A DNA stretch of 64,000 nucleotides from Orbicella franksi. Lineage: Eukaryota. The translations under genes and the position numbers were made by a program. The notes beneath the pieces were generated by a model, which was not told where the DNA came from, made no database searches, and was given only the letters and a program-made list of their open reading frames with translations. The DNA lies in contig OZ116699.1 in NCBI GenBank assembly GCA_964199315.1, forward strand, positions 19,530,001 to 19,594,000, written 5' to 3'. This document shows positions 50,846-60,300 of the stretch, in pieces; position 1 is the stretch's first letter, and each line of letters begins with the position of its first letter.

Positions 50846-51398
50846 TTAAATTTATCGAGCCCCGACTACCACTCAATTCTACATGATACACAAGTATCTT
50901 CAAATTTAGGTCGGCATAACCTTAAATTGCTAAATTAAATATTTTATAATTTTTTGTAAAAGAGTAATTTTATAAAAAAAATTCTCTCCGTGCAAGTCGT
51001 GAACGGCGGTAATAGATTCGTAACGCACGAGCACCGACTCGATATTTTAAACTTTTTCTAAAATTTTCTGCCTATGTTTTTTCTTCCATAATACAGCAGA
51101 GATCATCACATACACTGTACAAAGTACTGCGTTTCCGCAGAACAATAATATGTTACATTAACATAGACCTAACGTTTTACAACAACAACTGGACATAATT
51201 ACATTAATGCAACAAATAATTAAACTTACTGCAGTATTCAAAAATGAAACAACCCACTACACGACAACATAGGAAGATATCGCACAATTTTGTTCTGTAA
51301 TAAGGCACTTGCCTAAACTTAAAAGGCTGTTCCTTCACGATTTAACTTGTATACAAGAAACACAAAGTAGGTCAGTGTTTAACTGAAGGAACATTTGC

Positions 51399-54300
51399 TT
51401 AAAATGTTCTGCCGAAGATGACAGTGTCCGGAGGCGCTGGTTCCTTGAGTGGAATATTATAGAATCCTAATTTGGTGTAGAAGTCCAGAGCGTTGTTGTT
51501 TGTGGTCGCAATCTCACAGTGCACCCCTGTGCAATCTTCAGCCTTCAGCGCCGACAGAACACAGGCTAACAGGCGCTTGCCAAGACCAAGGTTCTGTCAG
51601 GAGGGAACAAAAGATGGTGAGAAAAAAAATAAATTAAAAAAAAAAAAAAACTGCCAAACAACAACTGGGGGAATACACATCAACATCAGATTAAGCACTT
51701 CTGATAAATTGTAGTGTCTCTATGTGGGTGATTGGCTCTTTAGTTTCCAAATGTTTTCTTTAATCTTCAGACTCTCAAAAGATTCATTGTGATGAGCATA
51801 CTTTATCTAGGCTGTGTACATTTGCCCACTCCCCTCAAGAAAGATTGGAAACAGACTTCCATTGAGAATGAACAGACTCCATGTGATGGATAAGAGAAGA
51901 TAAGGTGCAGTTGGCAGACAAGGTGCAAAGGAAAATCTGTAAACAGATTATCCATATCAATTATAATTCGATTACCATAACACAAGGCTTCCATGATTTT
52001 TTTCTTATTACTAGCAATAAAGGAACCTAAAACCCTGGGGTTTTCTTGAGAGGCAGCTACAACATACCTGTGCACGAGGAAGAAGGTATAACTGTACGTG
52101 GGTGCTGAACTTTAAAGCCAAGTCTTCAGGAAGAAATATCTTTGGACTGTGAAAACTATTGGCCAGTTGTTCTGCATATGTCCACTCTAATGAATTTCCG
52201 TGTGGCTTTTGGTATTTCTTGCAAACCTAAGAAAACAATCTGAGGTATCAAGACACACTTTCTGGCAAGTCTGTGGAGCTAAGAAAGAATATGTATGTAG
52301 ACAACTACTGTTAAGTAGCAGGAAAATATATTTGTACATACCTCAGGAAGCCAGTGTTTCTTAAACTGCTCATAAAAGTGTTTTGAATCAGGAGCCGCCA
52401 CTGCATAGCCACAGATACCATCTCCATCCTCCACCACGAACACATGTTCAGGACAGATCCTCAGGTATGGACCAACAAACCTACACAATGTATTCATAAA
52501 TTTATTTATAACCATAGAAAACCAGCCACACAGTCACTGCTCCCCCAAAAGGGTAAACTGTGAATGCTACAAGTGACATTTTCGATACAGCTTCTTTGAG
52601 AAAGGTTCTTCAACAAAAATGCAAAAGGATACAAGACATGTCCTGCATCTGAGATAGTCCACTATGCTGGTATAGACTATATTGAGGATTTTGTGGCACC
52701 TTCGGCTGCCCGACAGGCCAACGTGACAAGGCTGATTGATATTACGGGAAGAGCTTAGTTTATAATTGCTTGGTTGGGGTTCACAGTGTTTCAGCAAGGA
52801 AGGAGAAAGCATGAATACACATATCCACACTGTCTCCATCTATCATACTGAAGCACCTTGAACTTCAATCAATAAATCAACAGTGAACCACATTACCCAT
52901 GAGAACTTTCAATACTGCTATTTACACAGTTACTCTTCTGTTGTACAGCCTTTCTCAACTTAGCTCTGATTAACCGAGCAGGAGGTCTGTATGCAAGAAT
53001 ATTGACCGAGGTTGTGAGTACAGACCAAATGCAGTGAGGTCTGTACACACGACCAAGGTCAAGATTCTCCCATACAGACCGACTAAGCTCGGTCAATAAG
53101 ATTTTTATTATATAGCAAACAAGAACAATTTTTTTTTTTTAACACTTGTAGAAAAAACTTGTCTGTGGCTCATGATTTATGGCAGTATAATACATAATTC
53201 TGGCTTCTTTACCTGTATTATTTTGTTAAAAGAAGTTTATCATGACATTTTTAATTATTAGTGTAAGAAAAATTATTACAGAAGTGTAGTTTTTTTTTAG
53301 GAAATTCAGTTACTAAAGTGCAGCTGCCAAAACAGGTCACCCACCTATCTCCTGCCATGTTGAATTGTTTGTCAGGAAATAAATCATGCCCATCTTCCCA
53401 ATCATCACACGTTGCAACACAAATTTCATACAAGGATTTCTGCCAAAGAAAACAGGCATGAATGACTTGCAATTCATGTGCTTTGTCAGGTCTGTCATTA
53501 AAGGCTGTAACCCATAACACCTGTTATGGCTGAGTACGGTTGATTTTCCCTTGATGCCACGAGTTAACGCCCAAGTCGCTAGTAGAGGGAAGGTGCCTAC
53601 GAAGCCCAGGGTCTGCAACCGCAGTCACATCCCCGAGGCGCTAGAACACCTGACTGGCCTGCCCAACCCGCAACCAAGTCACAAGCCCCCCACACCAGGC
53701 CCCCTACAGGCACCCATCACACTCAAGCCAGATGGCTCAGCGGAAAAAAAAATGCTGAAAAGAGGGGGGGATAGGGAGGGAATGCCAAGAACCGCTAAAC
53801 TACTATAATTCAATCTATAACGCCACGCTAACAGAGCAACGAACACACTGCAAGTATATGGGACAACAACGCACTTACTAACCAAGAATACCGCTGGACA
53901 ATGTCAGCCCCAGGGCTCTCACGACCACATGACTGCTGCAAACACTACAGAACACTTAACAAATGCTAACAGACGGCCAAGACACTATCAAACGCCTACA
54001 AAAAACGCTACTGACCAGACTAGCTCCTGGTCATAAACCATGTAAAATTTCATTGAACTATATCAAACGCTACAGAATGCACCAAACACTAAACAAACGC
54101 TAACAGACAACCAAGACACTAACAACCGCCTACAAAAACGTTACTGACCAGACTAGCTCCTAGTCATTAACTATGTCAAATTTCATTTAACTATATCAAA
54201 ATTGTTTGTTGTCGATATAATTCGCCCACAAAGCAACAAGTTTGGTTGTGGAGAACAAGGTTACAGGTGACTCAAAACTTAATGACAGCCTTGCTTTGTT

Positions 54301-57300
54301 TTTCAAGTGAACAAACCATCTTTGCACAATCTTGCCCTAAGAACTGTAAGACACCACTGTGTGCACATTATGGCGCGTTAAAAAGAAGTGCAGTGTTCAT
54401 AAGAAGTTATACATCCTGTAAACGTACTTTCTTGCTAATTAATGACATTAATCACACCAGCTAGCTGATTATTACAGTCACATTTTAAGTTACAATGCAA
54501 TATATAGTGATTGGTTAACAATGCTGTCACAGCACCACATTGCTTATGAGCAAAAGTATTCAAAGATATACTAAAGTTTAAAGAATCTATACCTCATCTT
54601 CTGTCTGGTATGGTCTGATTGTGTAGATACGCGTAGTGGGAATTTCAGGGGCTCTCACGTTGAACACTTCATGTCCTCCATCAATAGGTAACAGTCTCTG
54701 CAAACACAATACATACTAACATTGAGAACACTAGTTCAAATCAGTCTATTCTTCTGTATGACCTTTATCATCTGCAAGAATGTTTGCAATGTATCTTGCT
54801 ACCAGCCTTGTTAATACATAAAGTATGGGGTAAAATGGAAAATGTCAAGCCCACTATTGAACTTGTTTCAGCCTAGTAGAAGAAATCTCTGGGATAGTTT
54901 GTCTTTCTGAATGCCACCATTATTGCAACCTAGGGACTAAATGCAGTATCCCTGGAATACATGTAGCCAACCGTGAAACATACCTGCAGCTCTCCACATA
55001 AACCTCCTCTAAACACCCAAGGTTCAGGATCTTCTGGGTAAAAGCTTTGCCCTTTTTGCTTCCTCCTCTTGTTCTTTGTGCTCAGCCAATTTACAAATGT
55101 GTCGAGCAACTGCAAGACTTCCTTTACATCCCAGACATATGGATAGAGGTCATACAGTAGTGCTCTATTGGATGTTTCTGTTAGTCTCACAAACATCTCT
55201 CCTACTGACCGACAGATTTTGTGGAACTTCTCAGCTCTGTCATTCCATTCTGTTATCTGGAATGTGGCAAATTGAAACCCATGATAAGTGCCTTTGCTAG
55301 CATATAACAACAGTACAGTCAAACCTCTACAGTAAGGACACCAAAGGGACAAAGCTGAGTTTCAGTATTATAGAGGTGTTTATATTAGAGAGGTTGAGAT
55401 TGAAATAATGAATTCTGGTTTCTCTGGGACCGAGTGAACTGTCTGTAATATAGAGGCAATCTATACAAGAGACTTTGAACAGGTCAAGTAACAGCTCAGA
55501 TTAGCGTATATATTTGTAATCAAATGTAAATATTCCAGACATGATGTCATCATTGCTGTTATAGACTCATCCCACACAATTAACACCTTCCATTTTCATA
55601 AGTCCTTGAAAAAGTATCAAGAAACTGTGCAATAGTGTATTACATCATCCAAGTTTCTTAAATACAACATCAATATATCGGCAGATTGCCAATGAGATGA
55701 CAGGTGACATAACAGATAAAATGATCAACTCAAAGAGTGTTGCTGTGCAGAATACACATGTACCATTAAATTATTATACAGTACCATCCTTATTACCAGG
55801 TTTGGAATAAATGGGTTTATGACCATACCTTAGATTTCTGCTCTTGTTCAGTAAGCTCCATGAAGTCTTGTGAATCTTCCTTAATTGCATTGAACTTGAG
55901 CCATTTGAAATCAGTTATGATCTGTTTGGCTTTCTGCCCATGATTGTATGGTAGGTAGAATAAATCTACCAGCAACAGAAGGTCCTCGACACTCAGTGGC
56001 GTCAAAGCAGGTTTCTCCTTTAGTTCACTTATTTCCATTGGCATTTCCTGCTCTTTCTTTTCAGTGTCTTCATCTTTCTTTTCTGACATGGAACAAAAAC
56101 AGTACGTTACTGATCACCAATCAAAACATAGGCATGCAAGGCGTGCAAGAGTTATTTTTTTGTGTGAAGTGTTGGAGATAGGAGCATTCATGGAGCTGTT
56201 TACAGACATGATTTGGTTAATTTAACATGTTTTTGGTTGCGATGTACAGCAAGAAAGAAACTGGGAATTTATGATGTACATGTGATGTTACATCAGTCAT
56301 GGTAAGATAGCTAAATAGTGAGCCATAAAATGTTTGACTAAACAAACTACAGTAATCTGACACGTCTCCAGATTAATGTAGATAATACCATCTTATTTTT
56401 TAACAGATAATTTGATTCGTTCTTTGATACAACCCCCACTGTGATTGGTGTGACACGCACACATGCGTAACTCCCTCACTCACTGATCACATAGCTCTTC
56501 CAACCCCCAAGAAGAATTTTTGCTCAAAATTAATCAAGTTAATTAAGAGACCTTTTCATATTTTATATGAGTGGTAAGTTTACCCTTTCTACACAACACA
56601 ACACTACTTCACCAAAAATAGAAAGAAAGAGAAAAAACCTCTCTGATATGTTCAAAGTCTGATTTAATTGAATTGCACTTTAAATTGGTGCCACACAGTC
56701 TTCAAAGAACATTTGAGCAATTTTCATGCTTTTTACCCTTAAAAATATCGGACTGAAATGAATGTCATCAAATAAAACTATTAAAGTGCTACTGCAGAGA
56801 CGTAAAAACCGTCCAGAAATGAAAGCTTCTCTTTTGTTTAATATCCTGGAAAGAATAGCCGATAACTTGTCAGCTCTAATTGAATTTACTCCCATATAAA
56901 AAACAAAAGTGTTAAGTTACCATTTGTACCTAAAGATAGCAAACTTCTCGAGGGAAAGAGTGGTGACAATTCATCAGCTCTAATTGAATTTACTCCCTAA
57001 TGAAAAACAAGTGCCAAATTACCCTTTGTAACTAAAAAATAAAAATATCTCGTTATATTTGCATGCAACAAGAACAAAACAATCGTTACCTGCACTTACT
57101 ATTGTAAACGTTAGAACTGTTTCAAATCTAAATAGTCTTGTCTCCTCTAAAACATGTCCTAAGAACTAGAAGCGACGATTCGTGACCTCTAATTGAATTT
57201 ACTCCTTGTGAAAAACAAAAGTATCAAGTTACCTTTGTAACTAAAAATGAGAATATCTCATTCCATTTGCATACTACTAACTCACGAACTGTTTCAAACC

Positions 57301-60300
57301 TCCAGGCTCATCTCGTTCATAACTAAAATCCTCAGCCTAACCCACAGAAAATGTTGAAGTAAACCCAATATATGAATACTTCCTCCTCTTTTATAGAAGA
57401 ATAAATATGGCCGTTGTGAACTTTATTGGGATCAAATCTTCTCACATATCATTTACCTTTAAAACAAGAAATTTGACTGGCTGTTTATAGTAGATCCAAT
57501 CTGATTGGTGTGACATACATTCATCTCTCACTCACTCACTCACTCATCCATTGGCCTGTCCATAACATACCTGACGCGACGACTAAGGGGTATTTTTTTT
57601 TTTACAAAAAAATAACTCAAAAATTGGATCCCCTCTTTCATAGAGTGATTTTCACAAAACTGTCGCAACACCAACACCAGAACAACCACATCTTACCATG
57701 TGCAACAAATGCAATAAACCACTCAAATGCACAAAGCTACCATTTTTTCACAAAAAAAAAAAACAGTGCATCTGTGCCAATTGATTGGTTAGAGCATCTT
57801 GTGCAAGTTCACGGAGAGGGGATAGAACTCAACAAAGCAAGCCTGGAACAAGTAAAAAGGGGTGAATATTCTTTTGGTTATTTAAGTATCCTCACTGTGT
57901 GCTCCCTTCCCCTGGTCGGGGTCACTTTGTTAGCCCGGCATTCCACTCCGACTTTGAATGCGTCCATGGCAGGTCCCAGCAGCATCATCACTCAGTCCGG
58001 ATGGCTAGCTTTCTTCAATTCAGAGCTTTGTAGTGTGTACTATAGAGATGAATTTGGCTTCGAATTTAACTGAAAGGGAGTGCTTAACCCTGTACTATGA
58101 TTCTGTAGAGGAATTGGGGCGGCTGGCATGCTTTCAATGTTTTTTTTTTTTTTTTTTTCATTTCAAGCGGCAGTGAGTCCAGAATTGAGTGTCTAGCCTT
58201 TACTCTATCTTAGGACAGGAAAACTAAAAAGCGATAACTCGCTTAAAAGGCTTCGGATTGAACTGAGAAGCGAAATAACAATAGAAAAGAGAACAAGGCA
58301 TTGAGGTAAATCATTTTGATTGCAAAAATATCAAAATTTTGGCTAAAATGTAGATTACAGTTTTTCCCCATACAAACCTTTATAAATTCAAACCGTTGTA
58401 ATGAAACAGCTCCATATGCTGCAAGGCGAGAGTCACATTTAGTGTACTCAAACTCGGTCGTTATGTAATTATTATCATAGTAGATGTCAGCCATAGTATG
58501 TCACTGAACATTCGCATAAAGATTGTAATAATAACTCCTTGTATCGTGAGCTTGGGCCGCTCGTGTTTGAGATAGTTTTTGGACGAGAAAGTGACCTACA
58601 TCTTTAAGCCATTTGGTTTTTTCAATTTTCTTTTTCGCCTTTCCTTTTTCTCCTTTTCTTATCTTTTTGCTGCAGTGATAGACCTTCTACTGGGCTTGCT
58701 TCCAGTTCAAAAAGTCCTGAAAGACAGGCAATTCCTACTACTGAGTAGCCAAGTGTAGTTGAAGGAAATTTTGCTCTGAGTTTTTCTGTGCATTTTTGAG
58801 CATATTTCAGACCCCACTGACCCCATCACTCTGATCTCAGCATCATTGCCTGATTTCAAGCCGAAAAGGACTAGGTACGAGTCTACAAATTATGGGTTTA
58901 GCAGCTATTGATCCGCATAGTCATAAAGTGCATGCCAAGCTTCACAAAATCCCCAAGTTTGGTGCAAATAGACTTAATAGTAAGAAAGATACAACCATTT
59001 GAAAACATCAAAATTCACCAAAAATGTATGGCCATTCGGACGCTGTGTCCCGATGACCAAATATTTCTATGTAATTTTGGCGTTTTTAAATGGCTGTATC
59101 TCAGTCAAAACTAGCCTGATTAACACTAAACTTGGGGATTTTGTGAATCTCGATGTGCACTTTCTAACTATGTGGATGAATAGTTGCTAATCCCATAATT
59201 TATAGACTTGTACCTAGTCCTTTTCAGCTTGAAATCAGGCAATTGGAAAGATATTTTGCTCCAGCAGAACTAGATAATGCCAATTTTGGTGAAAGCTGAT
59301 GACGTCGGGAGTAGAACAAAGGGCAACATTCATCATGGCCAGTCACGGCCAGCACGGGTGTCAATAAGTTAAAAGGGGGTAAAAGAAATCCATGGAACCA
59401 GCTCAAGACTTCTAAAGTGAAGAAAATCTTTCAGCTTTCAGCTCATACATGAGTATGTAGCTATGAATAATATTTGTAATTTCTAGCTCTTACCTGAAGC
59501 CGAAGAAGTGCTAAGCTTTTTCCTACTGTTTTCCTTTGCCACCTTTATTGGTGAAGGAGTCACTACAGGTGAGCACACAGTGGTAGTAACATTTGTATGT
59601 GAAGTTGGACATGTCCCAATAGGTGCTTGCACAGAAATTGGCATAGCCTCAGGTGTCATACTGTAGGCACCACTTTTGGCATAGGTTCTGGATGTAGCAT
59701 GTTTTACTTTAGAAAATTCTTCCAGCCAAGCAGATACAGCTTCTCGCAGAGCATTCTGTGGGTTGTAACTGGTACGTACAGTAGCGCTCCTAGATTCACT
59801 CAATGAGGTAGCACTTTCTGTCTCCATTTCACCTTCTACCTTCACACTTTCACTATCTGTTTCACTAGAACTGATTTCTTGAGAAACTCCTTGATCAGCA
59901 TCTTTCTCACAATTGCCATCTCTATCACTCTCAGTACTGGCAAGCAAATCTTCTTCCATAGGTTCACTCGAACTACTTGATTTCTCAGCCTTTAAATCAA
60001 TACTCATCGGTTCTTCAGCAGTGAGCAGGGAGGAATCTCTTAGCCATGAAGATAGAGTGTGGACAGCAATGAAGTTACTCTCAAACTCACAGTTAGGATT
60101 GGTCAGTACACCATTTAGCAAGGGGAAAAGTTCAACTGGCCTCCCGTCGTACGGACCCAAAAAGACACGTCTCTGATCATAGTCATTGGCATGAATATTG
60201 TCCCAGATGACAGGTTTCCTTTTAAGCACTGTTGTAAGAGCCTCAATAGTTTGTGTGGTAATCACTTTGGAAACCACTTTTGGACCTAAAATGAGTGAAG

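Follow-up and report, generated by a model that had tools for sequence, protein, structure and literature searches.

The 64,000-nucleotide window analysed here (Orbicella franksi, GenBank assembly GCA_964199315.1, contig OZ116699.1, positions 19,530,001 to 19,594,000 of the forward strand) carries on its minus strand the 3′ end of the single-copy O-GlcNAcase (OGA) gene of this stony coral. The C-terminal GNAT ("pHAT") domain of the encoded protein is expressed and correctly spliced. As judged from its sequence, this tail keeps the full set of acetyl-CoA (AcCoA)-binding features of the bacterial proteins OgpAT and SsAT, unlike the eukaryotic OGAs that have been examined biochemically. The reading we prefer, with a probability of about 0.55, is that the coral tail is an ancestral GNAT domain that probably binds CoA or AcCoA. 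The kept feature set comprises a Q-x-x-G-x-G P-loop at the N-terminus of helix α5, an Asn that contacts pantetheine, and a Thr that replaces the clashing Met of vertebrates. The pyrophosphate would then rest on the backbone amides of the P-loop, with pantetheine paired with strand β4.

What the OGA tail does and how it arose have been under debate for twenty years, during which it was regarded first as a histone acetyltransferase and later as a "pseudo-HAT". The "NCOAT" activity originally claimed for human OGA is disputed. Galan Bartual et al. concluded in 2025 that the pHAT domains of eukaryotes lack the ability to bind AcCoA, a eukaryote-wide conclusion that rests on seven species, with cnidarians absent (PMC12494797). 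Our literature search found no full-text paper on the cofactor site of a coral or cnidarian OGA or its relation to AcCoA. Stony corals are a natural candidate for a counter-example, holding every cofactor-site feature whose loss has been invoked for the human result. What is new is an animal OGA with a tail that, by sequence, is no pseudo-domain, and corals may thus reveal the former role of the "pseudo-acetyltransferase" domain.

The structure of OgpAT with AcCoA provides the reference for the cofactor site. Its P-loop, Gln143-Gly-Arg-Gly-Val-Gly148, grips the pyrophosphate, while Asn175 touches pantetheine and Thr25 lines the site (PMC3814719). OgpAT binds AcCoA with a dissociation constant (Kd) of ~8 μM, and swapping its G-R-G for the human D-P-S abolished binding (PMC3814719). 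SsAT has the same loop and a Kd of 20 μM, and its one side-chain contact is Asn227 (PMC3919268). Human OGA, which is without AcCoA binding, has Thr852-Asp-Pro-Ser-Val-Ala857, Asp884 and Met735 (PMC3814719). The exons and codons of the coral tail domain to which these residues are compared are listed here with the evidence for each:

51399..51593, minus strand: last coding exon, 64 codons and the stop (DNA reading, RNA joint 51593 to 52068, Pfam)
52068..52226, minus strand: penultimate exon, 53 codons (DNA reading, alignment, RNA joint)
52068..52070, minus strand: Gln CAG codon, P-loop position 1, the final codon ahead of the intron (alignment, codon reading)
51579..51593, minus strand: N-L-G-L-G codons, P-loop positions 2-6 (codons AAC CTT GGT CTT GGC)
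51498..51500, minus strand: Asn AAC codon, counterpart of OgpAT Asn175 and SsAT Asn227 (alignment; PMC3814719, PMC3919268)
52342..52480, minus strand: GNAT-domain exon, F-V-G-P-Y ... H-W-L-P-E (RNA joints; matches to 6r45 and 3zj0)
53345..53439, minus strand: GNAT-domain exon (DNA reading, RNA joints, alignment)
54593..54697, minus strand: exon bridging stalk end and GNAT-domain start, R-L-L-P-I-D ... T-E-D-E (DNA, RNA joints)

These five exons, placed from the DNA with GT/AG borders throughout, form one open frame of 230 codons, and the last two of them lie within 51399-52226 (-). The penultimate exon ends with strand β4 and L-L-P-R-A-Q, followed by a GT donor. The last exon, with its coding part at 51402-51593 and the stop at 51399-51401, begins with NLGLGKR after an AG acceptor and holds P-loop residues 2-6, helix α5, strand β5, the motif B Asn, the F-Y pair and the C-terminus. 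Direct HMMER alignments of the coral domain and OgpAT are gapless from strand β4 through the loop to past the F-Y motif, and place Q-N-L-G-L-G in the same column, and at the same length, as the OgpAT P-loop Gln143-Gly148 (Q-G-R-G-V-G). L-L-P-R-A-Q is identical in the two and is followed by D/N-L-G-L-G in corals versus G-R-G-V-G in OgpAT. The coral Gln at 52068..52070 thus corresponds to OgpAT Gln143 and human Thr852, and the residues encoded by 51579..51593 to OgpAT Gly144-Gly148 and human Asp853-Ala857. The Asn at the OgpAT Asn175 position, on the helix that follows β5, is conserved, seven residues ahead of the F-Y tyrosine, and a Thr (codon ACG, 53410-53412) stands at the position of OgpAT Thr25 and human Met735. 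The coral loop is of full length and, where the helix that follows β4 begins, fits [Q/R]-x-x-G-x-[G/A]; α5 is equally long in coral, human and OgpAT. By sequence, these residues place the coral domain outside the degenerate pHAT class, in which the P-loop consensus is lost, with Asp-Pro or a loop deletion. The original prediction had described QNLGLG as GNAT motif A together with an intact motif B Asn, and both align with OgpAT, where the human protein has T-D-P-S-V-A and Asp884. The human region that it quoted was correct, and the bacterial homologues OgpAT and SsAT do retain the loop, as it had stated, and also the Asn.

The P-loop is assembled across an intron, at a junction (52068/51593) that is in phase 0 on both sides and joins L-L-P-R-A-Q directly to N-L-G-L-G-K-R. 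Public RNA was compared with 51200-54800, and the runs X1, X5 and X23, which come from three different studies, all contain this exact joint. In X23 it is carried by 20 raw reads with 18 start positions, and in X1 and X5 by RNA contigs; 474 bases between 51593 and 52068 are skipped, with CT..AC ends on the plus strand. The three upstream junctions of the tail domain are present in the same runs with similar support, and RNA coverage by contigs and raw reads is continuous over 51200-51597. The same join occurs in annotated (RefSeq) or transcript-derived orthologues of Montipora, Pocillopora and Stylophora. DNA reading, RNA and three coral genera therefore agree on the phase-0 join that the original prediction had drawn between the last two exons, and the RNA joint matches the junction that forms the motif and not one that breaks it. 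A splice artefact is ruled out by these RNA joints. A long T/A run lies in the last intron at 51619-51658, and contigs and reads look cut there.

The coral domain also differs from other OGA tails in its match to the Pfam Acetyltransf_1 model (PF00583, cut-off 20.7 bits). The last exon alone scores 29.7 bits (E 8e-7), which is not a chance match, and the Pocillopora/Stylophora and Montipora domains score about 40 bits. An anthozoan transcript (P0209) reaches 36, Holothuria 24.8 and Nematostella 23.8 bits, while the tail domains of Actinia, a snail and a vertebrate gave no match to this model. Among the OGA tails scored, only the coral domains pass clearly. The loop reads Q-D-L-G-L-G in Montipora, Pocillopora and Stylophora, Q-D-H-F-L-M or R-D-H-F-L-A in sea anemones, E-V-S-L-T-A in the hydrozoan Hydractinia, and S-V-P-E-K-V, with a deletion, in Trichoplax. 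Molluscs, arthropods, a brachiopod, a nemertean and chordates have loops like x-D-[PSQ]-S-V-[APS], and echinoderms keep the loop in part (Q-D-V-G-V-T, E-D-K-G-V-A). Altogether 24/135 tail-domain sequences fit [QR]xxGx[GA], and these come from scleractinians, two environmental eukaryotic proteins (P0237, and P0238 with its cluster mate P0271) and one bacterial protein. A motif widespread among invertebrates is ruled out, since it is degenerate in the sampled anemones, the hydrozoan, Trichoplax and all sampled bilaterians, and the non-binding invertebrates with a readable loop are without it.

Across Scleractinia, the block of residues around the cofactor site has stayed constant even as synonymous sites reached saturation, which reflects strong purifying selection. 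When Montipora-like and pocilloporid transcript DNA was compared with the window, the synonymous rate (dS) ranged from about 1 to >3, and its ratio with the nonsynonymous rate (dN/dS) was 0.03-0.06. For the 50 codons from L-L-P-R-A-Q to K-L-G-F, dN was 0.018-0.036, compared to 0.06-0.105 for the rest of the domain. The Leu and Gly codons of the loop show synonymous differences between genera. In the 40-residue stretch that runs from the loop to the Asn, the three coral lineages differ only at loop position 2, with Asn in the window species and Asp in the others. Purifying selection on the coral tail extends across the deepest split among living Scleractinia.

An AlphaFold2 model of the Pocillopora domain, which is 90% identical to that of the window, was built ligand-free from a 40-row alignment and has a mean pLDDT of 93. 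Its best match in the Protein Data Bank (PDB) is OgpAT with AcCoA (3ZJ0), with a template modelling (TM) score of 0.87/0.91 and a root-mean-square deviation (rmsd) of 2.0 Å. The next matches are the Trichoplax pHAT domain (6R45; TM 0.83-0.86, rmsd 2.9-3.0 Å) and SsAT (4BMH).

In a maximum-likelihood (ML) tree of the domain, the window protein groups with Pocilloporidae (100/97) and Montipora (100/99), and the coral domains lie inside an anthozoan clade with sea anemones and the proteins P0209 and P0237 (91/95). Because the coral domain is nested in Anthozoa with the sea anemones, it was not acquired from bacteria, and bacterial origin or contamination is ruled out. P0238 (L002, JGI 3300047102), an environmental eukaryotic OGA fragment with stalk helices and a GNAT domain, branches between the bacterial protein and all animals. 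It is fully canonical, with the loop Q-G-R-G-M-G and equivalents of both His135 and Asn175. P0209 (L001, Logan SRR19329411) has the loop Q-G-R-E-L-G, in which the Glu codon GAG is one base from a Gly codon, and P0237 (L003, JGI 3300018935) has R-I-S-G-L-G and no motif B Asn. These two anthozoan-like proteins, with their near-canonical loops, cluster together beside corals and anemones. The degenerate lineages keep differing subsets of the motif: the Gln in anthozoans and a sea cucumber, Gly4 in echinoderms and Ala6 in many. Such differing remnants suggest that a canonical ancestral motif decayed several times independently and that Scleractinia escaped this. The better-supported reading is that the coral state was inherited from an ancestral OGA and not re-invented: bacteria and a pre-metazoan eukaryotic OGA fragment have a canonical loop, Scleractinia have kept it intact throughout, and each of the other lineages shows its own form of decay.

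Some further sequences related to the coral tail were encountered. A metagenome scan for eukaryotic relatives returned four loci, three near-identical to the coral sequence and one more distant. Acropora muricata, A. cervicornis and A. digitifera have short proteins (116-188 amino acids; P0234, P0272-P0276) that resemble the OGA tail, carry the RefSeq name "putative acetyltransferase OgpAT" and end just past the P-loop (Q-D-L-G-L-G or Q-D-L-R-L-G). They could stem from a duplication followed by truncation, from use of an alternative 3′ end, or from an OGA annotation that was split.

Several observations weigh against an ancestral, cofactor-binding domain. When scored as one binary trait, the motif requires at least three changes on the tree, a count that does not separate retention from regain. 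The preservation of an ancestral OGA state, as originally predicted, fits the distribution better than re-invention does, with its direction left undecided by binary-trait counts. The fold prediction comes from a relative of the window protein and from a model that holds no ligand. The OgpAT His135 position is Gln in all four scleractinian sequences, and the Asp137 position is Tyr or His (in the window, Gln codon 52092-52094 and Tyr codon 52086-52088). Most corals have Asp at P-loop position 2, like human Asp853, and Asn occurs there only in the window species; Asp at this position was deemed unfavourable by Rao et al. (PMC3814719). Human Asp853 adjoins a Pro and is without loop glycines, a setting in which the coral Asp differs. 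Additional residues in α5 relative to tGCN5 have been invoked by Galan Bartual et al. (PMC12494797). They are common to coral and human; OgpAT is also gapless there, yet binds, and with α5 equally long in all three these residues are no bar to binding by OgpAT. We know of no acetyl acceptor even for OgpAT. Finally, by surface plasmon resonance (SPR), 0/7 eukaryotic pHAT domains bound AcCoA, in a panel of human, mouse, chicken, zebrafish, fly, worm and Trichoplax without a cnidarian (PMC12494797).

The negative results for all seven eukaryotic domains, the Asp that persists in most corals and the altered equivalents of His135 and Asp137 would fit a coral domain that is a non-binding pseudo-acetyltransferase, with a loop needed for folding, for dimerisation or for contact with a protein or peptide, for example as a histone-tail reader. 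Cofactor-free dimerisation, a peptide-binding cleft and allosteric roles are described for the Trichoplax and human pHAT domains (PMC12494797), and binding of methylated H3K36 has been reported for the human one. We consider this less likely than cofactor binding. The P-loop consensus is absent in the tested species with a readable loop (human, Danio and Trichoplax), so their negative result says little about corals. The coral Q-x-x-G-x-G, Asn and Thr are also more constrained than the rest of the domain, and since fold and dimer persist in lineages that lack the glycines, folding is no explanation for retention in corals only. It is quite improbable that the coral OGA is a true bifunctional enzyme that moves acetyl from AcCoA to a protein or a small-molecule amine, even though the cofactor-site features are intact, a Tyr is present at the position of SsAT Tyr234 (the proposed general acid), a Glu is present at the human Glu879 position, and pHAT domains are said to conserve the acceptor cleft in part (PMC12494797). 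The proposed general base, OgpAT His135, is Gln in all corals, the acceptor site is narrowed by insertions, and neither acetyltransferase activity nor an acceptor has been shown even for OgpAT and SsAT (PMC3814719, PMC3919268). The wider proposal that Scleractinia would be the sole animal lineage with genuine "NCOAT" activity, in which an O-GlcNAc hydrolase is fused to an active AcCoA-dependent acetyltransferase, is similarly hard to credit. The Gln at the general-base position lowers the claim of acetyltransferase activity and not that of cofactor binding, and efficient acetyl transfer by the coral domain is doubtful. With Gln in corals replacing the His that is proposed to be catalytic in OgpAT, the domain would more probably regulate the OGA dimer by binding a ligand than catalyse acetyl transfer efficiently. 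Least credible, to the point of being nearly negligible, is an artefactual motif, whether through an incorrectly chosen splice site, a pseudogene, contamination or a recent insertion of bacterial DNA; no evidence in its favour was found. Three runs, each from a different study, show the RNA joints exactly, the frame is intact from start codon to stop, orthologues in three coral genera share the gene structure, the tail clusters with anemone OGAs, and purifying selection is strong.

If the coral domain does bind CoA or AcCoA, the loss of binding in other animals could be dated and the role of the ancestral enzyme indicated. Binding would also join two modifications that sense nutrients, O-GlcNAc and AcCoA/acetylation, in one protein, in animals that rely on symbiont-derived carbon. 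The tie between O-GlcNAc removal and AcCoA sensing, already raised in the original prediction, is speculation. Were the enzyme bifunctional, O-GlcNAc removal would be directly tied to AcCoA availability and protein acetylation.

The remainder of the gene has the organisation expected of a metazoan OGA (MGEA5; GH84-stalk-GNAT), and the presence of a GH84 domain, an Asp-Asp motif, a stalk and a GNAT-like tail identifies it as such. The window holds the 3′ two-thirds of the gene on its minus strand. The other features inside the window are:

51200..51398, minus strand: 3′ untranslated region, at least to here (RNA contigs and raw reads)
54984..55256, minus strand: stalk-domain exon (borders by best spliced fit to Pocillopora OGA)
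55829..56082, minus strand: exon reaching from the linker into the stalk (spliced fit to Pocillopora OGA)
59494..60285, minus strand: large exon with the C-terminal half of GH84 and an acidic, serine-rich disordered linker (Pfam NAGidase)
62877..62988, minus strand: GH84 exon, E-Y-C-G-T ... I-M-W-T-G, 5′ border approximate (match to Pocillopora OGA)

The first four exons, with the start codon, lie 6.4-8.9 kb past the window end (L011 6428-8853), and the catalytic Asp-Asp motif, F-A-L-L-F-D-D-I-D, is in the exon 6.4-6.6 kb past it (L011). In the spliced model the frame is open from start codon to stop, and the GH84 exons, the stalk and the C-terminal GNAT-like domain follow one another in a single reading frame. 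The upstream exons align to Pocillopora OGA, and the downstream exons match vertebrate and coral OGAs over both stalk and GNAT-like domain. Against Pfam NAGidase/GH84 (PF07555), the 59494-60285 exon reaches 63.7 bits, which, together with the catalytic motif upstream and the alignment of the tail with human OGA, bears out the original assignment of the gene as OGA. The tblastn match to exon 1 crosses ~44 unaligned codons with one stop, most likely an extra intron. A search of the genome for a second copy of the tail domain returned matches only to exons of the OGA locus, and a paralogue elsewhere in the genome is thereby ruled out. Two OGA introns (52894-53135 and 53499-54345) contain a repeat with a related copy near 63359-63738. 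RNA-contig depth over the intronic repeat is in the thousands, versus ~40-130 on exons, and near-identical short open reading frames occur in opposite orientation at 53828-53941(-) and 63359-63472(+). The intronic repeat is probably an abundant transcribed mobile element.

Among the closest known counterparts of the coral domain is the human OGA pseudo-HAT (residues ~700-916), an orthologous domain in the same place of a GH84-linker-stalk-GNAT protein (PMC3814719). The two align end to end (E 4e-44, human OGA residues 691-915) and have in common a β3-β4 insertion, the length of α5 and the F-Y-x-K-L-G motif. The human domain differs in having T-D-P-S-V-A for Q-N-L-G-L-G, Asp884 for Asn and Met735 for Thr; it gives no Pfam GNAT match, compared to 40 bits for coral, and is a shown AcCoA non-binder. 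The Trichoplax adhaerens pHAT domain (6R45) is a non-bilaterian orthologue with the same fold and forms a homodimeric tail of OGA (PMC12494797). Its loop, S-V-P-E-K-V, differs in a one-residue deletion and the lack of any glycine, its motif B is degenerate, and it too has been shown not to bind AcCoA. With the last coral exon as query, the Trichoplax domain was undetected at E≤10. Sea anemones (Nematostella, Actinia, Actinostola and Exaiptasia) are the closest named relatives outside corals, at 56-61% domain identity, and share L-P-R-A-[QR], the Asn and the Thr with them. Both loop glycines are gone in anemones, and the Pfam GNAT model gives them 23.8 bits or no match. OgpAT from Oceanicola granulosus (3ZJ0) and SsAT from Streptomyces sviceus (4BMH) are stand-alone, AcCoA-binding bacterial GNATs. 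Unlike the coral domain, which is fused to GH84, they are encoded unfused beside a GH84 gene; overall identity to coral is ~30%, and OgpAT His135/Asp137 are replaced by Gln and by Tyr or His in corals. These bacterial proteins and the coral domain nevertheless have in common the P-loop consensus and its length, L-L-P-R-A-Q, the Asn175/Asn227 residue, Thr25 and the F-Y pair.

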